The notes beneath the pieces were generated by a model. It worked only from the letters and a program-made list of their open reading frames with translations, was not told the DNA's origin and searched no databases. From positions 62,001-126,000 of the IMG/VR virus record IMGVR_UViG_3300022200_000019: 64,000 nucleotides of DNA; one strand, written 5' to 3'. Below, piece after piece: positions 3,679 to 62,565 of the stretch. Positions within the stretch are counted from its first letter, which is position 1; every line of letters starts with the position of its first letter. The position numbers were made by a program, and so were the translations under genes.

Positions 3679-3707
3679 AATAGGGTCTAGACAGACCCTA
3701 TTTTTTT
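3679..3707 (+). terminator. Rho-independent terminator
   Basis: aatagggtct-agac-agaccctatt followed by a T-tract. Confidence 0.8.
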
Positions 3708-3741
3708 GACTATAATATGTGTATAGTTTATTACATACCGT

Positions 3742-3770: not shown

Positions 3771-3799
3771 TTGACAATTCTTGTACAATTGGGTATAAT
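3771..3799 (+). promoter_or_regulatory. Sigma70-type early promoter
   Basis: TTGACA-17-TATAAT, perfect consensus. Confidence 0.85.
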
Positions 3800-3839
3800 A
3801 AGCACTCATTCAACAACATAGCAAATATAGGAGTTTACT

Positions 3840-4859
3840 ATGAATGTGCGTATTTCTTATGGTACATATCGTGCAGACAACGGGTCTGTACAAGAAGTAC
3901 ACGACCAAATTTTCGAGTCAATTGCCCCTGTTAAACACGGCAAAAAAGGAGCATACATCACTGTGCGGCCCAATGACACAGTTAAATCACAGCGAGATAA
4001 AATCCGTGTAAAAGTTCAAGAACAAGATCTTGAATATCTGGATGCACCAGTTCTGGCACCAACAATTACACAAATTACAGAAACTGATGAACAAGTAATG
4101 GACCGCATTGAAACACGTTTTGGAGTTCTGGAAGACATGACCCGTGCAGCAATTAATAGCGACGTGCGTGCTATGATTGTAGTTGGTCCGCCAGGCGTGG
4201 GCAAGAGTTATGGAGTTCAAACTCAACTTGAAAAGAGCTCTATGTTTGATCGTCTTGCAGGCAGCAAAGTTAAGTACGAAGTTGTTAAGGGTGCTATGAC
4301 TCCAATTGGATTGTATGCTACGCTTTATAATCATGCCGACAAAGGAAACGTACTTGTATTTGACGATTGCGACAGTATTCTGCTTGATGATTTGTCACTG
4401 AATTTGCTTAAAGCGGCCCTTGATTCTGGGAAGAAGCGTACTATCCACTGGAATGCGGATAGCTCGCTACTGCGTCGTGAGGGTATCCCAGACCGCTTTG
4501 ATTTCCACGGCGCAGTAATTTTTATTACTAACCTGAAGTTTGACCATGTGCGCAGCAAGAAGTTGCAGGACCATTTGGAAGCACTGCAAAGTCGTTGCCA
4601 CTATATTGATTTAACTCTGGATACTATGCGTGATCGTTTGTTGCGAATCAAACAGATTCATCGCCGAGGTGACCTGTTTGAACACTACTTTTTTCAGGGC
4701 AACGAAGGAGATCAGGTAATTACATTTATGGAAGATAATCAGGATAAACTTCGTGAAATGAGCCTGCGCATGGCGCTTAAACTAGCAGACTTAATTAAGG
4801 TTAGTCCTGCACGCTGGAAAGATATGGCAGCAGTAACTTGCATGAAGAATAGTTATTAA
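3840..4859 (+). CDS. AAA+/P-loop ATPase
   Basis: Walker A GPPGVGKS, Walker B LVFDDCD, sensor FITN, ALQSR arginine finger; AGGAG RBS. Confidence 0.75.
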   Translation: MNVRISYGTYRADNGSVQEVHDQIFESIAPVKHGKKGAYITVRPNDTVKSQRDKIRVKVQEQDLEYLDAPVLAPTITQITETDEQVMDRIETRFGVLEDMTRAAINSDVRAMIVVGPPGVGKSYGVQTQLEKSSMFDRLAGSKVKYEVVKGAMTPIGLYATLYNHADKGNVLVFDDCDSILLDDLSLNLLKAALDSGKKRTIHWNADSSLLRREGIPDRFDFHGAVIFITNLKFDHVRSKKLQDHLEALQSRCHYIDLTLDTMRDRLLRIKQIHRRGDLFEHYFFQGNEGDQVITFMEDNQDKLREMSLRMALKLADLIKVSPARWKDMAAVTCMKNSY

Positions 4860-4860
4860 A

Positions 4861-5556
4861 ATGAGTTGGTTCATTGAAAAACCTACTATTTTAGGAATGC
4901 AGTTTAAAAATAAACTGCCAAGACCCTCAAAAACCGGTGTTGATTGGTTTTTATTTTCATACTTCTTAGAGAAGTTTAAGAACCAGCCGATGCTCGAAGT
5001 TGGAGTAGGTCAAGGTGGGAGTGCCTTAACAATGTTAAATTTTACAAAAAACTTAACAATAGTTGACTCATGGGAATATGGGTATTCAAGGGACGCATTT
5101 ATTGAATTAGCCAACAGCCATAAGTTATCATTTAATGAGATTGTGGTTAATTCACAAAATTTTATTCCAACAGAAATATATAGTTTTGTACATTTAGACG
5201 CAGATAAAGAATATAATAGCGTGATGCATACACTAGAGACAGTTAGTAATTATTGTACAGATATTATCTGTGTCGACGATTATTTACAATCGTTGTGGCC
5301 AGAAGTGTCATGGGCGGTAGATGACTGGGTAAAAACGTCAGGTTGGAAGAGGTTTTTTACAGGCAATCATCAAGTCTTTTTAAGTAAAAAAGCATACCCA
5401 ATTAAACAATTAATTGCAGATTTGCCGTTGATGAATAATAAAGAAGGATATCAACTGACTTATGGCAAACTTCCTCAAAATGAGTTTATTGATAACGGAC
5501 CATTAACATATACGTGGCACGAAGTACAACAACGGGAAAAGAGTTTAATACTCTAA
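4861..5556 (+). CDS. SAM-dependent methyltransferase (Methyltransf_24-like)
   Basis: LEVGVGQGGS, IVDSW, FVHLDADK, VDDY. Confidence 0.65.
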   Translation: MSWFIEKPTILGMQFKNKLPRPSKTGVDWFLFSYFLEKFKNQPMLEVGVGQGGSALTMLNFTKNLTIVDSWEYGYSRDAFIELANSHKLSFNEIVVNSQNFIPTEIYSFVHLDADKEYNSVMHTLETVSNYCTDIICVDDYLQSLWPEVSWAVDDWVKTSGWKRFFTGNHQVFLSKKAYPIKQLIADLPLMNNKEGYQLTYGKLPQNEFIDNGPLTYTWHEVQQREKSLIL

Positions 5557-5561
5557 GGTTT

Positions 5562-5646
5562 TAAACTAGAGAACACAATTGCTATGTTGAACTCCTAAGT
5601 TCTCTGGTTTATTTGGCGCAAGATGAAATACTCTTGCGCCTTTTTT
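5562..5646 (+). ncRNA. Candidate 3'-UTR-derived sRNA: hairpin with anti-SD loop plus terminator
   Basis: 13-bp stem 5562-5574/5599-5611, 24-nt loop containing TTGCTATGTTGAACTCCT, then terminator ggcgcaaga/tcttgcgcc plus T-tract. Confidence 0.5.
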
Positions 5647-5662
5647 ATTTTTGTGTTATAAT
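5634..5662 (+). promoter_or_regulatory. Sigma70-type promoter overlapping the terminator
   Basis: TTGCGC-17-TATAAT with TGn extension; ATG 6 nt downstream (leaderless). Confidence 0.6.
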
Positions 5663-5668
5663 ATTGTT

Positions 5669-6787
5669 ATGATTCGTAAAGTAATCGACAGAGAAACAGC
5701 ACACTTGTGGATGCGTGAGAATTTACGCTTTAGTCGTTATGATATTAACTTCGTAGAAAATGTTGCTCGTTTCATTAATGACAACCGCCCGCTTACTGTT
5801 AAACAGAACGATTTATGGGAAAAGATTGTTCATAAGTATCGTAAGCAGATTTATAACGAAAGTCAGAACACACTCACAGATGAAGATATCCTAGCCAAGC
5901 AGTGGCGCCAAGGCCCTGTAGAGTTTGATCCTAGTTACGCTCCGTTGTTGTGGATCGAAGATGATGTTATTAAACTTCGTTTTCCGTTTAACAAAGACGC
6001 AGTCGCTGACTTGCGTACAGTAATTCAAGATGCTGGTCACGATTATGGATTAATGATGTCTTCTGTACATCATGAGTATATTCACTGGGATAGAGACGAA
6101 CGTGTATGGCGTGGTACCGCGTATCCTACCTTAATTCGAGACTTGTACTATTATTCTAAAGATCATAATTTTACTATAGATAAATCAGTTCAAGACATAG
6201 TAGATAGCATTCCTGGAGATGAGTTTGATTGGCGCCCATACGCTGAGTTATATGGTGACAGCTATATGATTAGTAATTTAAGTCCTGGATTATTAAAAGC
6301 ATTGCCACCTAATGAGATTACTCTCAACGCCGTTAGAGATCTTGTCGGATTAGAAGTTACATTAAGTGATACACTACAAAGTTATGTGGCACAGAAATAT
6401 GGATACCATATTGGACGAATTGCTTGTCAACGCGAAGTACGCATTGATATGAACGATATCAAATTGGTCAAACAGTGGCTTAGAGAAACAGATAACGATA
6501 TCTTTGTTGTACATAAGCAGTATGCTGATTATGCTGAAAATTTTAAATTAGAACAACAAACACTTGTTCCTGAAAAGTTTGTGAGTTTAGCAGACTTCAG
6601 AAACACCGCTGGCGGCATTGGTGATTATCATGTGTTTAGCAAAGATGGCGACAACTATACATTAGATAACGGTGTTGATTGTGTAGTTTATATGCCCGGA
6701 ACAGCGTTTAATTACGAAGCACTTGCACACATTGCTAAAAAGGTTATTACAGTAGTAGAAGATGAAACAAGCACGATTAATAATTAA
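5669..6787 (+). CDS. Hypothetical protein upstream of the helicase
   Basis: Long ORF overlapping the next gene; in-frame ATG 5669 directly after the -10 box. Confidence 0.6.
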   Translation: MIRKVIDRETAHLWMRENLRFSRYDINFVENVARFINDNRPLTVKQNDLWEKIVHKYRKQIYNESQNTLTDEDILAKQWRQGPVEFDPSYAPLLWIEDDVIKLRFPFNKDAVADLRTVIQDAGHDYGLMMSSVHHEYIHWDRDERVWRGTAYPTLIRDLYYYSKDHNFTIDKSVQDIVDSIPGDEFDWRPYAELYGDSYMISNLSPGLLKALPPNEITLNAVRDLVGLEVTLSDTLQSYVAQKYGYHIGRIACQREVRIDMNDIKLVKQWLRETDNDIFVVHKQYADYAENFKLEQQTLVPEKFVSLADFRNTAGGIGDYHVFSKDGDNYTLDNGVDCVVYMPGTAFNYEALAHIAKKVITVVEDETSTINN

Positions 6788-8222
6788 AGACGAAGTGAAC
6801 GTCAAGATCGAAGGGTTGGAACTTTCAACCCGGCAAAAACTTGTAAACAAGTTCAAGTACGTTGTGCCACACGCACGTTATTTGCCAGCAGTTCGTCTTG
6901 GTCGGTGGGATGGTAAAGTAGCATTCTTCCAACTTGGTGGCAGCACATATGTTAACTTGTTGCCAGACATTGTTCCTATCTTAGCAGAATATAATTATGA
7001 TGTTGTAGTCGATGATCAACGTGATTATCGTACAGCGTTTGAGTTTGAACGTGTAGAAAAAGGTAGCTATTCGCACATTACTTGGCCTAAAGGTCATCCT
7101 GCTGAAGGACAGCCTGTTGAAATGCGTGATTACCAAATTGAAGTAGTTAATAACTTTCTGGAGAATCCACAGTCGCTACAAGAGATTGCTACAGGTGCCG
7201 GTAAAACCATCATGACAGCATCTCTGAGTCAGCGTGTTGAACAGTATGGACGATCGATTGTTATTGTACCTAACAAAAGTTTGGTAACGCAAACCGAAAA
7301 GGATTACATCAACATGCAATTAGACGTTGGCGTGTTTTATGGCGATCGTAAAGAGTTTGGTAAGACACATACTATTTGTACCTGGCAATCACTTAACTCG
7401 CTATTAAAAGCAACACGCAATCAGCAAGCGCCTATTACTATTGGCGAGTTTTTAGAAGATGTTGTTTGTGTTATTGTGGACGAAGTTCATCAGGCAAAAG
7501 CAGACGCACTTAAAACTCTACTTACAGGCCCAATGGCAAAGATTCCACTACGATGGGGTCTAACAGGAACCATTCCCAAAGAGGAGTTTGAGTTTCAGGC
7601 ACTTCATGTAAGTATCGGACCAGTGATTCACAGAATTGCTGCTACTGAATTACAAGAAAAAGGGGTGCTTGCTAATTGCCACGTTAATATTGTGCAGCTA
7701 CAAGATCATGCAGAGCATGCTAACTATCAAGCAGAACTTAAATTCTTGTTAAGCGATCAAGACAGATTAAATGTTATCGCACAAATGATTGAAGGTATTA
7801 ACGAGTCGGGTAATACACTTGTTCTGGTTGATCGTGTTAGTGCAGGCAATGATTTGGTGGAACGATTGGGTGATCGAGCAGTATTTGTGAGCGGTGCCAC
7901 AAAAGCAAAAGACAGACAAGATCATTATGATGAAGTTTCAGAAGCCGACAATAAAATTATTGTTGCAACGTATGGTGTTGCTGCCGTTGGCATTAATATT
8001 CCTCGTATTTTCAATCTTGTTCTTGTTGAGCCTGGCAAGTCTTTTGTTCGTGTTATTCAATCCATTGGCCGTGGCATACGAAAAGCACAAGATAAGGACC
8101 ATGTCCAGATATGGGACATAACGTCGACATGTAAGTTTGCTAAACGACATTTAACCAAGCGTAAAGCGTTTTATAAAGAAGCAAACTATCCGTTTACACA
8201 AGAAAAGTATGAGTGGAAATAG
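6762..8222 (+). CDS. uvsW: SF2 DNA helicase, T4 UvsW-like
   Basis: RDYQ Q-motif, ATGAGKT, DEVH, GLTGT, QSIGRG; N-terminal WDGK as in UvsW. Confidence 0.85.
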   Translation: MKQARLIIKDEVNVKIEGLELSTRQKLVNKFKYVVPHARYLPAVRLGRWDGKVAFFQLGGSTYVNLLPDIVPILAEYNYDVVVDDQRDYRTAFEFERVEKGSYSHITWPKGHPAEGQPVEMRDYQIEVVNNFLENPQSLQEIATGAGKTIMTASLSQRVEQYGRSIVIVPNKSLVTQTEKDYINMQLDVGVFYGDRKEFGKTHTICTWQSLNSLLKATRNQQAPITIGEFLEDVVCVIVDEVHQAKADALKTLLTGPMAKIPLRWGLTGTIPKEEFEFQALHVSIGPVIHRIAATELQEKGVLANCHVNIVQLQDHAEHANYQAELKFLLSDQDRLNVIAQMIEGINESGNTLVLVDRVSAGNDLVERLGDRAVFVSGATKAKDRQDHYDEVSEADNKIIVATYGVAAVGINIPRIFNLVLVEPGKSFVRVIQSIGRGIRKAQDKDHVQIWDITSTCKFAKRHLTKRKAFYKEANYPFTQEKYEWK

Positions 8223-8223
8223 G

Positions 8224-8252
8224 TTGCAATCAAAACTAAACTATACTATAAT
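8224..8252 (+). promoter_or_regulatory. Sigma70-type promoter (leaderless transcript)
   Basis: TTGCAA-17-TATAAT, ATG 6 nt downstream. Confidence 0.65.
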
Positions 8253-8258
8253 AATACT

Positions 8259-8762
8259 ATGAGAATTCACACACTAGACAATACAGCATACAACTTAGAC
8301 ACGCTACCGGAAGAAATTGATGATATGCGTTTTGCTATTCTTGATAATAGCGATCCTAACAATCCCGATTATTTTTACATTCCGTTAATCTTTTTAGAAT
8401 CATTTACAAGTCCGGCACTTGTACTAAAGATCGGTAATAAACAAATTAAGATGCCACTGGATTGGCAGGTGTTGATTGGAGAAGATGACTTAGGAGATTT
8501 AGAATCACTTCCGCTTACTAGTCTAAATGATCGCGACTTTAAGGTGTACCAGTATAATAGTTTAAGTTCATATGCACCTACATTCCTTCCGATTGAAATT
8601 GTAGATGTGTACAATGAAGTAAATTGGTATGCACCTAAATTAAAGAATGGACAATTCCTTGCTGTTCCACTAAGTGATGGTGAGAATCCAGAATGTGTAT
8701 ACTTTATTAAAGACGTATCCCGTAACTGCGAAGTAGTAGATTATAATAAAGCGTGGGGGTAA
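8259..8762 (+). CDS. Hypothetical phage protein
   Basis: ORF directly after a promoter, within the replication cluster. Confidence 0.6.
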   Translation: MRIHTLDNTAYNLDTLPEEIDDMRFAILDNSDPNNPDYFYIPLIFLESFTSPALVLKIGNKQIKMPLDWQVLIGEDDLGDLESLPLTSLNDRDFKVYQYNSLSSYAPTFLPIEIVDVYNEVNWYAPKLKNGQFLAVPLSDGENPECVYFIKDVSRNCEVVDYNKAWG

Positions 8763-22608: not shown

Positions 22609-22637
22609 TTGACAAATCTTGTATAGTGTTATATAAT
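22609..22637 (+). promoter_or_regulatory. Sigma70-type promoter with an overlapping 11-bp inverted repeat
   Basis: TTGACA-17-TATAAT; atagtgttata/tataacactat at 22623-22647. Confidence 0.75.
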
Positions 22638-22645
22638 ATAACACT

Positions 22646-23368
22646 ATGTCTAAATTAATAAAACGATACGATTATAAGAACCTATCTCGTGAACAAGTAG
22701 ACGGCAAACGTTTATATGCCACACCAGACGGCAGCAGAGTTCCTTCAGTAACTACTATCCTGGACAAGACTAAGCCTGCAGAAGCCAAACAAGCTCTCAT
22801 GGAGTGGAAAAAAAGAGTTGGTGTAGAAAAAGCACAACAGATCACCACAGAAGCTGCCAATCGTGGCACACGCATGCACACCTATCTGGAAAACTATGTG
22901 CTTACTGGCGAAATCAAAGACAAAGGAAGCAATCCGTTTGGTTGGGCCAGCCACGACATGGCACAGGAAGTAATTCACAAAGGTCTAATACATGCAGATG
23001 AATTCTGGGGTACGGAAGTTCCACTGTATTTTCCAGGCATCTATGCTGGAACCACAGACTGTGTGGGTGTGCATCAGGGTGCGCCAGCCATTCTGGACTT
23101 CAAACAATCCAACAAACCCAAGAAAACGGAATGGATCACAGATTACTTTTTGCAATTGGCCGCATACTCAGAAGCACACAACGAAGTGTATGGCACTAAA
23201 ATTAACAAAGGTGTCATCCTGATGTGTGTTCGCCCCACAGAATCAGAACCAGGAATCTACACCAAACCACCTGAATATCAGGAATGGATCATTGAAGGTT
23301 CAGAATTTGAACACTGGCGTAATGAATGGTGGAAACGAGTAGAACAGTTTTACATGGAGAAAAAATAA
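22646..23368 (+). CDS. PD-(D/E)XK exonuclease (RecB/Cas4-like phage exonuclease)
   Basis: PSVTTIL, RGTRMH, YAGTTD, LDFKQS, QLAAY. Confidence 0.8.
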   Translation: MSKLIKRYDYKNLSREQVDGKRLYATPDGSRVPSVTTILDKTKPAEAKQALMEWKKRVGVEKAQQITTEAANRGTRMHTYLENYVLTGEIKDKGSNPFGWASHDMAQEVIHKGLIHADEFWGTEVPLYFPGIYAGTTDCVGVHQGAPAILDFKQSNKPKKTEWITDYFLQLAAYSEAHNEVYGTKINKGVILMCVRPTESEPGIYTKPPEYQEWIIEGSEFEHWRNEWWKRVEQFYMEKK

Positions 23369-30104: not shown

Positions 30105-30392
30105 ATGCCACTAGTTGTTAGAATGGGAGATGTAAATTCAGCAGGAGGTGTTGCAACTTCCGGTGTCGTTACGGTTCTGGCTAATGGACGCCCTGTAGTC
30201 CCTCCAGGTACCAGTGTTACGCCACACACATGCTGCGGAGCAAAAGGGTGTGGTATTCATTGCGGCGCATCGACTACTATGGGTAGCCCTACTGTTTTAG
30301 CAGGCGGAATGCCGGTTGTATTTGTGGGTAGTCCAGACACGTGTGGGCATTCAAGAGCTACTGGTAGTCCAGATGTTATTGTGGGACTATAA
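30105..30392 (+). CDS. PAAR-domain baseplate spike tip protein (T4 gp5.4-like)
   Basis: VRMGD, TVLANGRP, H..C...H, CGH, GSPDV. Confidence 0.85.
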   Translation: MPLVVRMGDVNSAGGVATSGVVTVLANGRPVVPPGTSVTPHTCCGAKGCGIHCGASTTMGSPTVLAGGMPVVFVGSPDTCGHSRATGSPDVIVGL

Positions 30393-37843: not shown

Positions 37844-37907
37844 TGTAGACGCCAGGGTTGGGTCTACATACAAAAATAGACTTGCTTAATTTAAGGAGAC
37901 TAACATG
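37844..37907 (+). promoter_or_regulatory. ROSE-like RNA thermometer
   Basis: 5' hairpin tgtagac/gtctaca, then CTTGCTTA-att-TAAGGAG pairing the SD with a bulged G. Confidence 0.65.
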
Positions 37908-38336
37908 ACAAATCTATCTACATTCGACTTCTCACCTCTTAACCGTAGCGCCATTGGCATTGACCGCCTAATGAGTCATATGGTTCGTAACTTTGAATCT
38001 ACACAGCAGGACAACTATCCTCCATACAATATTGTTGAAGATAGTGAAAATGAGTTCACACTCGAAATTGCTGTTGCTGGTTTTAAGAAAGGTGATATCT
38101 CAATTACTTCACAAGACGGACAGCTAACTGTTTCTGGTGAAAAACAAGCGGAAGATACTCGCAAGTACACCTGGAACAAAATTGCTACACGCAAGTTCAG
38201 CCGTTCGTTCACATTAGGTGAATACGTTGAAGTAACCGGTGCTTCTCAAGAAGATGGCATTCTTTCTATTAAGTTAGAACGCATTGTTCCAGAAGCAATG
38301 AAGCCAAAAACTATTGCTATTGACTACAAAGGGTAA
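37905..38336 (+). CDS. Small heat shock protein Hsp20 (IbpA-like)
   Basis: NYPPYNI, LEIAVAGF, LTVSG, FSRSFTL, DGILSI, PEAMKPKTIAI. Confidence 0.93.
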   Translation: MTNLSTFDFSPLNRSAIGIDRLMSHMVRNFESTQQDNYPPYNIVEDSENEFTLEIAVAGFKKGDISITSQDGQLTVSGEKQAEDTRKYTWNKIATRKFSRSFTLGEYVEVTGASQEDGILSIKLERIVPEAMKPKTIAIDYKG

Positions 38337-38353
38337 TATAATGCAGTAACAGG

Positions 38354-38379
38354 ATAGGGAGGGTAATCCTCCCTATTTT
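38354..38379 (+). terminator. Rho-independent terminator
   Basis: atagggagg-gtaat-cctccctat-ttt. Confidence 0.7.
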
Positions 38380-38403
38380 GTTAAATATTAGTATAACAGG
38401 AGA

Positions 38404-38718
38404 ATGGATTTGTCTACTCAAGTTGAAACCAGAACAAGAATCAAGCCAAACATTGCACTGCAAGAACCGCCTATGTTTAAGGTAATCTACCTAAATGATG
38501 AACAAACCAGTATGCAGTTTGTTATTGATAGCCTTGTAGACTTTTTTGATTATGCACCTATTAGTGCTGAAAAGATCACAGAAGATATTCATGTACAAGG
38601 CTCAGCAGTTGTAGCAGTGTTGCCATACGAAATGGCAGAACAAAAAGGCATTGAAGTAACCGTAAGTGCTCGCAGCAACGGTTATCCACTACAAGTCAAG
38701 CTAGAACCCGAAGAATAA
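38404..38718 (+). CDS. clpS: ClpAP adaptor ClpS
   Basis: PPMFKVIYLNDEQTSMQFV..IHVQG.AVVAV..YEMAEQK..YPL. Confidence 0.9.
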   Translation: MDLSTQVETRTRIKPNIALQEPPMFKVIYLNDEQTSMQFVIDSLVDFFDYAPISAEKITEDIHVQGSAVVAVLPYEMAEQKGIEVTVSARSNGYPLQVKLEPEE

Positions 38719-38721
38719 CAC

Positions 38722-39087
38722 ATGTATATTATCGTTGGCGAAGATGCTGCCTCACAGGTAGATACCAAATATCTGGTTTTTGAATTAGATACCATTCTTT
38801 ATAATAAAAATGAAGCCCCACTTAAAAGTTATTGTGTTGTTGACAATGAACATGTTCCCTTAATTGAGGTTAATCGAATCGGTGAACTACAAGAACTACA
38901 TCAAAATTTAATTAAAAATTATCATAAACGTAACTGGAATTTTTGCTTACAAGCAATTGAACATCTGAAAGGAAAATTTCGTGGCGAATTAGATACATTT
39001 TATGATGATTTGGAAAAACGCTGCTCGGTATTTCAACAATTCGAACCGCCCGCAAACTGGACTGGTGTTTACGATAAGACCAAGTAA
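38722..39087 (+). CDS. Stand-alone homolog of the C-terminal region of the CHASE2 adenylate cyclase
   Basis: ELHQNL..YHKRNW..LKGKFRGELDTFY..RC..NWTG aligns with cyclase ELHNNM..YKERDF..LKGEFDGQMDKYY..RC..SWNG. Confidence 0.65.
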   Translation: MYIIVGEDAASQVDTKYLVFELDTILYNKNEAPLKSYCVVDNEHVPLIEVNRIGELQELHQNLIKNYHKRNWNFCLQAIEHLKGKFRGELDTFYDDLEKRCSVFQQFEPPANWTGVYDKTK

Positions 39088-39117
39088 TATACGCCGTTTA
39101 TCATCATAAAACCCCTA

Positions 39118-39125
39118 TATAAATA
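39118..39125 (+). promoter_or_regulatory. T4-type late promoter of the curli module
   Basis: TATAAATA upstream of csgF. Confidence 0.7.
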
Positions 39126-39152
39126 CTAGGACAAGTAGAATGGGGGTTCAAC

Positions 39153-39644
39153 TTGAAAAGCAACGACGATGGCCTTGCGGCTATTGTAGCAATTATTCTA
39201 ACAGTAATCTTTGTACTGTTTACATTTAAAGCAGAGGCAGGTGAGTTAACTCACCAGTTTCATAGTCCTGCGTTCAGCGGCAATGGGTATAGTACCCACG
39301 TCCTAACTATAGATCAGTTAGAACAACAACGTAAGCAGAAAATAAAAGACGACGAACAAGCCGCTATTGATAAAGCAGAACGAGACGCTAAATCAACTAA
39401 TATCTACAAGTTTAAGAACAACTTAGAAAGTCGTGTTTACGCACAACTATCTAAGCAAATTGCAGACGCTCTTTTTGGCGAAAGCAGTAATTTAGCAGAC
39501 ACAAGTTGGTCGGAAGTAGAAACCCCATTCGGTGATACCATTAAATGGAAACGTGAGAACGATATTGTATATGTTGAAATATACGATAGCAATGGCGATT
39601 TAGCCTCTGAGTTCCAGACACCGGTTGGGGATTTCGCATTTTGA
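39153..39644 (+). CDS. csgF: Curli assembly protein CsgF-like
   Basis: Signal/TM segment ending AEA, then GELTHQFHSPAFSG (cf. CsgF GTMTFQFRNPNFGG); adjacent to csgG. Confidence 0.75.
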   Translation: MKSNDDGLAAIVAIILTVIFVLFTFKAEAGELTHQFHSPAFSGNGYSTHVLTIDQLEQQRKQKIKDDEQAAIDKAERDAKSTNIYKFKNNLESRVYAQLSKQIADALFGESSNLADTSWSEVETPFGDTIKWKRENDIVYVEIYDSNGDLASEFQTPVGDFAF

Positions 39645-40483
39645 CACGCTTAATTCTACTACTACTCGCTGCTGGTATACTTGGAGGGTGCGTAGCAAAC
39701 CCGCCTAAACAGTACGAACCCCCATCTCGAATTGTAACTCACGTTGAAGGATTTATGGATATCCCGCCTCCTAGTGGCGGTAAACTTGTTGCGGCTGTAT
39801 ATGGTTTTCAAGATAAAACTGGACAGCGTAAACCCTCTGACAAACTTGCGAATATTAGTTACGCAGTAACGCAAGGTGCTGAAGTATGGGTTATTAAAGC
39901 CCTCAAGGAAGTGGGCGGAGGAGAATGGTTTAGAGTTGTAGAGCGTGTTGGATTAGACAATTTAACAAAAGAGCGTCAAATTATCCGACAAGCACGTCAG
40001 CAAGTTAATGACGAAACACCTCTTAAACCAATGCTGTTTGCTGGTGTGTTAGTTGAAGGAGCCATCACTGGTTACGACTCTAACACGTTAACCGGCGGAG
40101 CAGGAGCCAGATACTTAGGTATTGGTCCAAGCACAGAATACCGCCAGGATGTGGTAACTGTGAGTATGCGGTTAATAAGCGTTCAAAGTGGAGAAGTCTT
40201 ACTTAATACAAGTGTTACTAAAACTATTGTTAGTTTTGGCGATCACGTAAGTTTGTTCCGGTTTATTGATATGGGAACAAAGGCACTTGAGCTAGAATCA
40301 GGAACCACTGAAAACGAGCCGGTGAACTATGCTGTTCGTGTAGCAATCGAACAATGTGTAGTTGAACTGGTTAAAGATGGCGAACGCATAGGTATTTGGT
40401 CATATAAGACTCACGAAGAAGGAGCCAATGATACTAAAGAAGAAGTAAAGACGGATGAAAACTCCGTGCGTGGAGAAAAATAA
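39641..40483 (+). CDS. csgG: Curli secretion channel lipoprotein CsgG
   Basis: Lipobox LGGC; VYGFQDKTGQRKP, AVTQGA, WFRVVER.GLDNLTKERQIIR, GGAGARYLGIG, YRQDVVTV. Confidence 0.93.
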   Translation: MTRLILLLLAAGILGGCVANPPKQYEPPSRIVTHVEGFMDIPPPSGGKLVAAVYGFQDKTGQRKPSDKLANISYAVTQGAEVWVIKALKEVGGGEWFRVVERVGLDNLTKERQIIRQARQQVNDETPLKPMLFAGVLVEGAITGYDSNTLTGGAGARYLGIGPSTEYRQDVVTVSMRLISVQSGEVLLNTSVTKTIVSFGDHVSLFRFIDMGTKALELESGTTENEPVNYAVRVAIEQCVVELVKDGERIGIWSYKTHEEGANDTKEEVKTDENSVRGEK

Positions 40484-41172
40484 TGCGCAAAATATTATAT
40501 GTCCTATTAGGACTTTGGAGTTCAACAGTATTTGCCAGTGACGTGTATATTGATCAAGCAGGTTCAAGTACAACTATTGATATTACACAAACTGGTTCAA
40601 GCAACGAAGTTAGCGGCGACGCTGGCACTACAACTGCGGCAAGTGTAGATGGTACAGGTATTGACTTGGACATTACACAAATTGGTTCAAGCAACATAGC
40701 AGAAATTAACTTAGATACTGCTACAAGTGCTGACGTAGAATATACTGCTACAGGTAGTGATAACTTGTTTGACATTTATGTTAATGGTGGTTCCTCAAAT
40801 ACTGCTACAGTAAACGTTACTGGTGACAGCAACGAAGTAACAATTTGTGGAACCAATGGAGCAGCAAACTCAGCAGCAGGCTTTGCTACTATTACAAGTT
40901 CGGGCATAACTACTGCTGGAACAACTTGCTCAACAGGCATTGCGAGTAATGGTAACACTAATACTGTTACTGCGTATGGCGACTATAACTTAGTTAACAT
41001 TGAGCAAGGAGCAGGTGTTGGTGGATCAACTAACACAGTTACCATTGGCACAGCACTAGCAGGCGGCGATAACAACGTTGTAAACATTGTACAGGATAAC
41101 TTGGAAGCAAATACCGTAACATTAACAGTTGACGGTAGCAGCAACCGTGTCAATATTTTACAAGATAACTAA
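40483..41172 (+). CDS. Curlin-repeat protein (CsgA/CsgB-like)
   Basis: Signal peptide, then repeats of the IxQxGxxN type (YIDQAGSS, ITQTGSSN, ITQIGSSN, IVQDN). Confidence 0.75.
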   Translation: MRKILYVLLGLWSSTVFASDVYIDQAGSSTTIDITQTGSSNEVSGDAGTTTAASVDGTGIDLDITQIGSSNIAEINLDTATSADVEYTATGSDNLFDIYVNGGSSNTATVNVTGDSNEVTICGTNGAANSAAGFATITSSGITTAGTTCSTGIASNGNTNTVTAYGDYNLVNIEQGAGVGGSTNTVTIGTALAGGDNNVVNIVQDNLEANTVTLTVDGSSNRVNILQDN

Positions 41173-46863: not shown

Positions 46864-47000
46864 CTTCCTAGCATAGTCCCAATAAAAATACCAAGCATAA
46901 TACCTAGTGTAAACCCAATACCGCCGTATAACCTACGCATCGGTGCTTCTAGTTTATTTTGTGCTTCTAGATAAGCAAGTGTTGCTTGATGTTTAATCAC
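46860..47000 (-). CDS. 46-aa glycine-zipper membrane peptide (not in ORF track)
   Basis: GTG start; ...RRLYGGIGFTLGIMLGIFIGTMLGR; fills the gap exactly with overlapping start and stop. Confidence 0.55.
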   Translation of the reverse strand: MIKHQATLAYLEAQNKLEAPMRRLYGGIGFTLGIMLGIFIGTMLGR

Positions 47001-47271
47001 GCCGTGCGTCTTCCTTGCCTTCGTTAGCAGCGAGTCTATCTACATTTGGTCGTACACCAATTACATGACTCATAAGTGCGTCAATTTTAACTAAATCATT
47101 GTTCATTGTTTGAACACGGTTGTCCAATGCGTGAATAATGCCTTTAACACCGTTTACGTCACCGGTTACACCGGCTAAGATAAACTTAACTGTTAATAAT
47201 ACAAAATATCCTGCCGCCAATGCGCCGGCAATTGGAAAACCAACTTCACCAACTATTGCTAAAAAATCCAT
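46993..47271 (-). CDS. Single-TM coiled-coil membrane protein (YvrJ/BhlA-like GFP motif)
   Basis: VGFPIAGALAAGYFVLL, then RVQTMNNDLVKI; GGAG RBS; TATAAATA on the minus strand at 47302-47309. Confidence 0.65.
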   Translation of the reverse strand: MDFLAIVGEVGFPIAGALAAGYFVLLTVKFILAGVTGDVNGVKGIIHALDNRVQTMNNDLVKIDALMSHVIGVRPNVDRLAANEGKEDARRD

Positions 47272-47304
47272 ATAAACTCCCGTTATATGCTATGTTAACT
47301 TTAT

Positions 47305-48615
47305 TTATATGCAGATATCAAAAAGGTGCGGATAGGTTTTAATAATTTGATCAGCAAACGCAGGCTGCGTATTTTTTAAATGAGTTAAAATGCTTAAAAT
47401 ATCTTTTTTTGTATTAGGTAAAATTTTTCCAGTTTGCCGATATAAAAAATCTATTTGTTTAAACCGATTAACGTTTAATTCTCTACTATTTTGTTCTTCT
47501 AGTGCATTAGACATGTTTTGGTGTAATTCTTCAAGAATTTGCTGTTCAAACTTATCGCTGTAGAAATGACGGTGATTATGCTCGACTATTTGTTTTGCTT
47601 TGTTGAGTAAATTATTAAATTTATCAATTGGTAGGCTGCTTATTGTATGTATTAATTCTATGATTTTTTGATGCCTAACTTTAGAGTCTGCGATGTTATC
47701 ATAGCTCTCATCCCACAATGACTCAAATGTTTTAAATCCGTAATGTCTGAGATATTTCAAGCTACCAGGCCCCGCAAATAGTATGAAAGGCTGCTTCATA
47801 ACCATGGGTTTAAAAACTTTTTCAGTTAAATGAATTTTTTCGGTATCAAATAATGTTTCTAACACAATTTGTATCTGAAAGTTTTTGCAATCGTTTGGGT
47901 CAATTATAGCACTTGCGTCACTGCCGTGCTCATTTTTGGCTAGGTTCCAGGACAAAAAAATCTGTTGATTCGTTATTTGTTGTTGCATTGTTGGTTGTAT
48001 TTCGAAATAAACTTCGTTAGATACAGGCAACAAGTCATTTAATACATTGTAACGATACGCTCGTGTTCCGGTACAATCTCTGGAATACATTCCAAAACGT
48101 TGTGCATGATTGTTATTTTCCATGTCGTAATGTTTCCAATGTCTAAACCAATCTCTGCTGATTAAACCATGATAAAAATAATAGCAAGAAATAAAACCAT
48201 GGCGCTCAAGTAATTTAATCTCGTTGCTGTTTAATTCGCTATGACCGATGATTGAAGAATTAATGGTTGACAACATCATTATAAATTGTTTAAACTTTGA
48301 TAAATTTTCTGTATAAAGGTCATAGGCTTCTTGATCAAACCATTTTATTCTATTTTTTGAAATTGAGCTTTTGTCAATTTCAAATAATTCAAAATTTAAA
48401 GGTTCTTGGTCTAGCAAGTATATTCTACCATATAACCAATTGTGATTTAAATTATCGGTTTTATGCCTATGTATTTCTTCGTCACATAATGCAACCATAT
48501 TCCATAAATTTCGATTACCATGTTGGTTAAATGCATATACAAAGTTTTTGTTATTTTTATTTGGCCAACCATACTTGTGTGTTAAATAGTCATAAAAATT
48601 ATTAACGGAGAACAT
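47305..48615 (-). CDS. GT10-like glycosyltransferase, paralog 3
   Basis: IVLET...LTEKVFKPMVMKQPFILFAG..SL..L..YGFKTF..WDESYD. Confidence 0.5.
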   Translation of the reverse strand: MFSVNNFYDYLTHKYGWPNKNNKNFVYAFNQHGNRNLWNMVALCDEEIHRHKTDNLNHNWLYGRIYLLDQEPLNFELFEIDKSSISKNRIKWFDQEAYDLYTENLSKFKQFIMMLSTINSSIIGHSELNSNEIKLLERHGFISCYYFYHGLISRDWFRHWKHYDMENNNHAQRFGMYSRDCTGTRAYRYNVLNDLLPVSNEVYFEIQPTMQQQITNQQIFLSWNLAKNEHGSDASAIIDPNDCKNFQIQIVLETLFDTEKIHLTEKVFKPMVMKQPFILFAGPGSLKYLRHYGFKTFESLWDESYDNIADSKVRHQKIIELIHTISSLPIDKFNNLLNKAKQIVEHNHRHFYSDKFEQQILEELHQNMSNALEEQNSRELNVNRFKQIDFLYRQTGKILPNTKKDILSILTHLKNTQPAFADQIIKTYPHLFDICI

Positions 48616-54179: not shown

Positions 54180-54442
54180 GTTGGATATCGCTACCGGACC
54201 CTATACGATCTTCATGCTATAATTGTAAGCATTTAGAGTTTACAGAAGAATGGATTACATGTTATCCTTGGGAAGTTGGTCTAGGACATGCAAGCCATTC
54301 GCAAGGTGCTTTTTTAAAATGGCCCGGTGATGCCCATTGCAGTATTCATAATCGAATTGCATCTAATGCATTAATGTGCATGGAATTTGAACATAAATCC
54401 GGATACTCTCACTGGAGTCTTCACCAAAAATATAGACAATAA
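54176..54442 (+). CDS. Hypothetical Cys/His-rich protein
   Basis: ATGA-coupled; CYNCKH. Confidence 0.5.
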   Translation: MSWISLPDPIRSSCYNCKHLEFTEEWITCYPWEVGLGHASHSQGAFLKWPGDAHCSIHNRIASNALMCMEFEHKSGYSHWSLHQKYRQ

Positions 54443-54461
54443 TCAGCGAAACATATATAAT
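54433..54461 (+). promoter_or_regulatory. Sigma70-type promoter (leaderless)
   Basis: TAGACA-17-TATAAT, ATG 5 nt downstream. Confidence 0.65.
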
Positions 54462-54466
54462 AACAT

Positions 54467-54844
54467 ATGTTCGCAATAGGCGATATACACATGGATCAAG
54501 ATCCACCCAAGAAACCTAATATGGAACGAGACATTAGGCGCTCGTGGCACATTTGCGACAAAATTGAACAAAATGCTGAATATGCGCAACGGATGTATGC
54601 TGCCTTGTGTAACACAGAATGGGGCAAAGCAGATTTATTTGAACGCATCAAAGGAACAACATGGGCCTGCTCTTGGCGCTATGCAGGAGAACTTGTTGCT
54701 AATATAGGCAACAGAAACGAGGATTATTTGGACTATTATTGTTCCGGAGGTGAAGGACACGTAGACGATGAAATACGTGAAGATTTAAAATCAATAGGGT
54801 GGGTATTGGTATCTGCACCCACTACATTAGAAGACTTTATTTAA
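54467..54844 (+). CDS. Hypothetical phage protein
   Basis: YAALCN..W.CSWRYAG..DYLDYYCSG. Confidence 0.6.
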   Translation: MFAIGDIHMDQDPPKKPNMERDIRRSWHICDKIEQNAEYAQRMYAALCNTEWGKADLFERIKGTTWACSWRYAGELVANIGNRNEDYLDYYCSGGEGHVDDEIREDLKSIGWVLVSAPTTLEDFI

Positions 54845-62366: not shown

Positions 62367-62404
62367 ACGCTTACTGTAAACAACAGCAACAAGGAGCACA
62401 TAGC

Positions 62405-62551
62405 ATGGACTACTACAACTTTGATGACGAAAACCAAATCGTAGACACCCTGGACTACGTAGATGTCGACAACTACTTCACCGATGACTACAATGCTGAT
62501 GAAGCAGAGTGGTCAGACGATGACTTTGATGTTCTTTCTTTTGACGCTTAA
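62405..62551 (+). CDS. 48-aa extremely acidic early protein
   Basis: AAGGAG RBS; 18 D/E, no K/R/H. Confidence 0.7.
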   Translation: MDYYNFDDENQIVDTLDYVDVDNYFTDDYNADEAEWSDDDFDVLSFDA

Positions 62552-62565
62552 TCAGGAGTTCAAAA

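Follow-up and report, generated by a model that had tools for sequence, protein, structure and literature searches.

Organization of the ATPase operon and its 3' end

The stretch of DNA analysed here (64,000 nucleotides, hereafter the window) is part of the 212.9-kb uncultured phage contig IMGVR_UViG_3300022200_000019, about 30% of which it covers. It has no near match among GenBank phages, the distant matches lying only in the helicase gene. The features relevant to this work are the following, in window coordinates.

3771..3799 (+), consensus sigma-70 promoter of the operon (TTGACA, 17 nt, TATAAT), with an inferred start near 3806
[quoted passage not shown]
3840..4859 (+), AAA+ ATPase gene (339 aa), homologue of T4 NrdC.10 / phrog_1250, whose start region the loop matches
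4861..5556 (+), lineage-specific inserted ORF (231 aa) between the ATPase gene and the hairpin
5562..5611 (+), conserved RNA hairpin, with arms 5562-5574 and 5599-5611 and loop 5575-5598; the core GUUGAACUCC (5586-5595) is invariant and sits at the 3' side of the loop
5615..5652 (+), intrinsic terminator ending the operon (9-bp G+C-rich stem 5615-5640 plus T-run), which would form the 3' end of any released small RNA
5634..5671 (+), next promoter, with -35 TTGCGC (5634-5639, inside the 3' arm of the terminator) and extended -10 TGTTATAAT (5654-5662), followed by an ATG at 5669
47272..47296 (-), candidate trans site, the start region of a 92-aa gene, with AACATAGCA and GGGAGTTTA spaced as in the ATPase leader
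62554..62563 (+), candidate trans site, AGGAGTTCAA at the start region of gene 62566, an exact 10-nt complement of the loop

The promoter at 3771-3799 matches the consensus at 12 of 12 positions and is kept in all relatives, while its spacer sequence varies freely. About 80 nt upstream, a terminator (3679-3702) overlaps a second good promoter (3688-3716, 11/12), so that tandem promoters precede the ATPase operon, and relatives keep both. The leader is 97-100% identical in three related loci (L028, L032 and L038; loci of relatives are numbered L throughout), where the coding DNA is only 75-82% identical. It can fold a weak hairpin, CAUAG (3817-3821)/CUAUG (3838-3842), of -4.8 kcal/mol, which holds the AUG in the stem and leaves part of the SD in its loop. 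An ACAUAG box upstream of the SD is kept in relatives as distant as 45% protein identity.

The ATPase is 32-45% identical to proteins of T4-type and other large phages, and more than 8000 homologues at about 60% identity exist in metagenomes, on contigs up to 361 kb. Sequence searches with this protein and with the 372-aa protein encoded downstream gave no informative hit on function. An AlphaFold model of the ATPase (pLDDT 72) returned only generic AAA+ matches in a fold search, with weak ORC/Cdc6 matches on top (TM about 0.35). The locus lies in a replication module with helicase, primase, DnaB and polymerase genes. Elsewhere in the window there are host-like genes in a row, Hsp20 (37905-38336), ClpS (38404-38718) and a CsgF-like curli secretion protein (39141-39644), followed by two ORFs, one of which (40483-41172) has a signal-peptide-like start and a repeat-like sequence; this stretch (37905-41172) may be a phage-borne curli-type module. 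In addition, a small PAAR-motif protein, probably a tail-spike tip, is encoded at 30105-30392 next to large structural ORFs.

The hairpin consists of 13 pairs, one of them U.G, closing the 24-nt loop ACAATTGCTATGTTGAACTCCTAA. Three nucleotides later comes the terminator, whose 9-bp stem has 6 G-C pairs and is followed by TTTTTTATTT; there is no T-run on the other strand, and relatives show a compensatory G-C to A-U change in the outer pair of the stem. Hairpin plus terminator fold at -31.2 kcal/mol against -17.4±2.6 for dinucleotide shuffles (z -5.3, 0 of 200). No complementarity that would allow an antiterminator pairing with the terminator was seen by eye, and both hairpins are stable in the fold. 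A search for tRNA and tmRNA found none, and the window gave no Rfam hit at the gathering threshold, the best sub-threshold hit around the hairpin being NmsRb at 22.8 bits against 52.

Downstream, the ATG at 5669 lies 6 nt after the -10 with no SD, so the 372-aa gene (5669-6787) apparently has a leaderless mRNA. The spacing of 6-7 nt, but not the sequence, is kept in relatives. Several genes start 5-8 nt after a TATAAT with no SD (ATG at 5669, 8259, 22646 and 54467; regions 5654-5671, 8224-8261, 22610-22648 and 54440-54469), suggesting that leaderless mRNAs are a recurrent feature, and distant relatives (L203, L205, L212, L225 and L259) show the same layout for the gene that follows the ATPase. 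The 372-aa gene overlaps the start of a UvsW-like SF2 helicase gene (6762-8222); distant relatives lack the 372-aa gene and place the helicase directly after the ATPase 3' element.

The original prediction had described this hairpin at the end of the early operon driven from 3771, with a loop complementary to ribosome-binding sites, and every sequence statement it made proved exact. Loop nucleotides 5587-5596 are the reverse complement of AGGAGTTCAA at 62554-62563, nucleotides 5579-5589 of CAACATAGCAA at 3814-3824, and nucleotides 5590-5597 of TAGGAGTT at 3828-3835, the last two in swapped order as stated; AAGGAGCACATAGCATG, proposed to match the loop with an internal bulge at gene 62405, lies at 62391-62407. 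An exact 11-mer between a 24-nt loop and one named 33-nt leader is expected about 8e-5 times by our calculation, and the relation is conserved in relatives. The observation is therefore confirmed.

Conservation of the hairpin as an RNA structure

To investigate whether the hairpin is maintained, we collected relatives from IMG/VR and JGI metagenomes. All carry the same module in the same order: hairpin, terminator, extended -10 promoter and ATG 6-7 nt later. Ten relatives keep the hairpin, and the 18 loop nucleotides TGCTATGTTGAACTCCTA are invariant in lineages whose flanking proteins are only 65-92% identical. In an alignment of 14 hairpins, 100% of 181 stem cells form standard pairs and five pairs change on both sides. 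The 16 one-sided changes are all G.U or U.G, which would be A.C mismatches on the other strand, and sliding the partner column drops pairing to 34-58%. A covariance model built from this alignment scored 77 bits on the + strand and 25 on the - strand, which together with the G.U pattern rejects a minus-strand RNA or a DNA cruciform. With filters off, the model found only this one copy in the 64 kb, and in the relatives only this locus, including L021, which was not in the seed. The element is therefore not a dispersed promoter/stem-loop (PeSL-like) or other repeated intergenic element. A scan of a genome collection with a 14-mer gave chance hits only, none with the hairpin.

Some lineages (L027, L033 and L036-L039) have a second tandem hairpin (H2, the first being H1) whose loop differs except for GUUGAACUCC, and the more distant L021, L042 and L203 have entirely different stems around the same core. 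A mini-ORF in the loop (AUG UUG AAC UCC UAA) was considered and rejected, as there is no SD, the stop is lost in L009/L018 and there is no AUG in H2. In L042, the most distant clade member, the antisense of the loop reads as a perfect start region (AGGAGTTCAAC then ATG; L042 position 746, -) opening a 99-aa antisense ORF, which is probably spurious but shows that the loop is the complement of an idealised ribosome-binding site plus start codon.

The ORF just upstream of the hairpin differs between lineages, which at first suggested a link to the downstream 372-aa gene. However, tblastn showed that the ATPase gene lies upstream in every relative, either directly adjacent to the hairpin or separated by one variable inserted ORF. 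The insert of the window (4861-5556) is absent in most relatives. This slot holds different ORFs in different lineages (L005/L026, L010/L034 and L021), while the last bases before the stem (AGTTTTTAA-like) are kept, which makes it an insertion hot spot. Furthermore, distant phages that lack the 372-aa gene still carry an anti-SD element after the ATPase gene. [quoted passage not shown]

Complementarity between the 3' element and the ATPase start region

In all 13 lineages of the clade, the 3' part of the loop pairs in silico with the SD-to-AUG region of the ATPase gene at -14 to -19 kcal/mol, and in most of them the 5' part also pairs with the 5' box of the leader, at -11 to -17 kcal/mol. The SD-side match is the ancient, covarying one, whereas the CAACATAGCAA match is confined to the window's own clade. 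Where sequences differ, pairing tends to be kept: the L039 leader change GCAA to GUAA gives a G.U pair, the L021 leader AUAGCAAUUA fits its loop UAAUUGCUAU, the L042 leader CAGGAG fits its loop CUCCUG, and the L036 leader GGGAG fits the CUCCC of its second hairpin. L034 is a counter-example, since it has a leader C where L042's apparent compensation would predict an A-to-G change in the loop and none is present. In the window itself, the SD-side duplex is only 10 pairs with one U.G, plus 4 more at the AUG across a 1x1 mismatch, and the leader's own weak hairpin must open. In each relative's available DNA, the ATPase start region is consistently among the best-matching start regions.

The decisive test was made on the wider family, for which 80 diverse ATPase loci plus three more were retrieved. 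For 62 non-redundant loci, we compared the start region (-20 to +3) with the first 140 nt after the ATPase stop codon. Own pairs averaged -14.45 kcal/mol against -11.97±0.31 for permuted pairs, and none of 5000 permutations reached the own value. With 31 representatives whose start regions differ at more than 7 of 23 positions, the values were -14.69 against -11.88±0.47 (0 of 20000). Exact Watson-Crick runs of at least 8 nt that include the SD core occurred in 61% of own pairs and 15% of cross pairs, and runs of at least 10 nt in 16% and 2%, respectively. In addition, the 3'UTR was better than equal-sized coding segments of the same gene in 52-54 of 58 loci (p about 1e-9). Because the loci share ancestry, the permutation values overstate independence and are not true probabilities; it is the number of different matched motif pairs that carries the argument. 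There are 29 distinct own complementary segments, lineage-specific flanks included, for example GGAGATGAGT, AGGAGCATTC, AACGGAGTAT, ACGGAGCAA, AGGAGCTAA and GGAGTTCAA.

In many lineages the anti-SD again occupies the 3' side of a large hairpin loop just before a terminator, while in others it lies unstructured at the stop codon. L205 has no such hairpin and its leader lacks GGAGTT. About 10 of the 62 loci show no SD-containing complement, and the T4-type phage Bp7 shows no comparable arrangement at nrdC.10. Pseudomonas phage Cassandra (L408), whose ATPase is 45% identical, is ambiguous, with an 8-nt flank complement inside a 3' hairpin arm.

Candidate targets in trans

We also looked at whether the start regions proposed as targets outrank other sites. 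The exact 10-nt match at gene 62566 ranked only about 16th (-17.6 kcal/mol) in a scan of both strands, behind many coding-sequence sites, and neither 62566 nor 62405 stands out genome-wide. Among 96 start regions, some of which came from a crude gene caller, the real loop has 8 sites at or below -14 kcal/mol against 2.0 for shuffled loops that keep CTCC (p about 0.013). This is a modest enrichment, obtained without the remaining ~149 kb of the contig, where further GGAGUUCAAC-type start regions may lie. The start region of the 92-aa gene at 47271(-), AACATAGCA..GGGAGTTTA..ATG, mimics the ATPase leader with both of its boxes. This ORF (46993-47310, -) has no Pfam hit and lies behind a T4-type late promoter, TATAAATA; more than 400 IMG/VR contigs encode homologues at 76% identity or more, mostly also behind TATAAATA. 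Its start region is not conserved in distant homologues. The homologues found for the 62566 and 47271 genes belong to unrelated phages, and no close relative's contig covers these sites.

Discussion

Our data show a conserved + strand RNA hairpin with a fixed place at the 3' end of the ATPase operon, and a covariation between the 3' element and its own start region. What this pairing does is inferred: that it represses rather than stabilises, that it blocks initiation, whether it acts in cis or in trans, and any release or cleavage of the RNA. The explanation that we favour, with fair but not full confidence, is a cis-encoded regulatory element in the 3' untranslated end of the early operon 3771-5650. 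In this view, the stem holds open a loop whose 3' half (UGAACUCCUA) is an anti-SD sequence extended by flanks that fit the operon's own ribosome-binding region (UAGGAGUUUA, and on to the AUG), whereas in this clade the 5' half (UUGCUAUGUUG) also fits the 5'-proximal leader box. Once the 3' end has been transcribed, the loop would pair with the leader, within the same molecule or between molecules if the hairpin-plus-terminator piece of about 90 nt is cut off, and would cover the ribosome-binding site and block 30S binding, so limiting translation of the ATPase made from a very strong promoter. As the two leader matches are in permuted order, a single loop cannot form both as one continuous duplex; they may be alternatives, or two helices radiating from the closed loop. 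The original interpretation, a 3'UTR-derived small RNA that shuts off early genes or autoregulates its own operon, is thus only partly supported: conservation and covariation back autoregulation, while a discrete small RNA and a general early shut-off are not shown.

A similar mechanism has been reported for the icaR mRNA of Staphylococcus aureus (PMC3868564), in which a C-rich anti-SD motif in the 3'UTR pairs with the SD region of the same mRNA, blocking initiation and creating an RNase III substrate. Here the element is in a phage, about 55 nt from the stop codon, displayed in a large hairpin loop next to the terminator, and the operon can hold a second ORF; it is conserved by covariation across a very large phage gene family, whereas icaR was reported as a singular example. 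With 3'UTR-derived small RNAs of Gram-negative bacteria, such as MalH (PMC8081044), it shares a conserved, predicted single-stranded seed in the last ~90 nt of an mRNA, the mRNA's own intrinsic terminator with its U-tail and a U-rich possible RNase E site 5' of the structure, although evidence for a released species, for Hfq dependence or for targets other than the parent message is lacking here. CpxQ and SroC are further small RNAs of this type. The c4 antisense RNA of phages P1/P7 is made from the same transcript as its target and pairs through two short separate segments with the region that includes the ribosome-binding site of a gene in its own operon; however, c4 lies upstream of its target genes and is processed out of the transcript, the present element is at the 3' end, and no sequence or structural similarity was found. 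In C-rich loop small RNAs of Firmicutes such as RsaE (PMC6435200), unpaired C-rich motifs in hairpin loops seed pairing with SD sequences. The hairpins of RNAIII also belong to this group. The motif is likewise duplicated in tandem hairpins, as in the lineages with H1 and H2, but those RNAs are independent genes with many targets and no homology to this 3'UTR element, which is tied to one gene.

The best surviving alternative, which does not exclude the above but which we regard as doubtful as the main function, is a trans-acting 3'UTR-derived small RNA that mainly represses other phage or host messages carrying GGAGUU(C/U)A-type ribosome-binding sites (genes 62566, 62405, 47271- and 39141). 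Besides the matches described above, a terminator hairpin with a U-tail and an A/U-rich spacer (5609-5614) are typical of Hfq-type small RNAs, and a conserved AGUUUUU just 5' of the stem resembles an RNase E site and would suit release. However, across the family the anti-SD flanks track the ATPase's own leader and not a common external target.

It is less likely that the loop is a site or decoy for an RNA-binding protein such as a RegA-like translational repressor, its complementarity to leaders being a by-product of both being start-region-like sequences. The loop sequence ACAAUUGCUAUGUUGAA, in the 5' half, resembles the T4 RegA SELEX consensus aaAAUUGUUAUGUAA, and RegA sites are unstructured and A/U-rich (PMC3014915). 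Moreover, the phage uses T4-type late promoters and carries an NrdC.10 homologue, and the 18-nt loop is invariant in close relatives. Nevertheless, the invariant core across H1, H2, L021, L042 and L203 is GUUGAACUCC, not the RegA-like half, RegA sites lie at start regions and not in 3'UTR loops, the loop carries the complement of a start region, and the lineage-specific covariation is not explained. No Pfam RegA domain was found in 20 small ORFs of the window, which leaves out about 70% of the genome.

A DNA-level element is also unlikely, that is, operator, iteron or origin sites (ACATAGCAA boxes) for a DNA-binding protein, possibly the AAA+ protein acting as an initiator, with the inverted repeat forming a cruciform or single-strand hairpin. 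The replication module and the ORC/Cdc6 fold matches could point to this, as could the duplicated ACATAGCAAAAC in L040/L034: about 60 nt upstream of the ATPase ATG in L040 and L034/L010, AACATAGCAAAAC occurs twice, once in the promoter spacer directly after TTGAC and once at the start of the leader, which could be a DNA operator or a recent duplication. Against it, the stem substitutions fit only one strand, the most conserved part is the anti-SD and not the ACATAGCAA box, complementarity always centres on the SD and covaries with it, and the fold matches are weak. Finally, a mere 3'-end protective or terminator-assisting hairpin is equally unlikely: although it sits directly before a terminator and stable 3' hairpins commonly protect mRNAs, such a hairpin needs no invariant 18-nt loop, no second hairpin with the same core and no lineage-specific match to its own start region.

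Pairing between the two ends of a bacterial mRNA is known from very few cases, and phage-encoded regulatory RNAs are still poorly charted (PMC12197685). Here, dozens of sampled lineages of a very large group of uncultured, often jumbo, phages maintain this element by compensatory evolution, attached to a conserved gene of unknown function, T4 NrdC.10, that sits behind a perfect consensus promoter. In the furthest-reaching reading, which we consider about as likely as not, this is a self-closing phage message: across a clade-wide family of NrdC.10-like ATPase genes, the 3'UTR would carry an anti-SD element that co-evolves with the gene's own ribosome-binding site, so that each transcript would switch off, or gate, its own translation once completed. 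This would be the first widespread, evolutionarily conserved 5'-3'UTR pairing device described in viruses of bacteria, and it may double as a small RNA. The family would also offer a ready-made covarying set of natural variants, such as the L272 pair GGAGAUGAGU/ACUCAUCUCC beside that of the window, for the study of how 5'-3' mRNA pairing works. If confirmed, the element gives a simple, portable rule for capping the protein output of a strong early promoter, and it would also hint that the dosage of this ATPase is critical.
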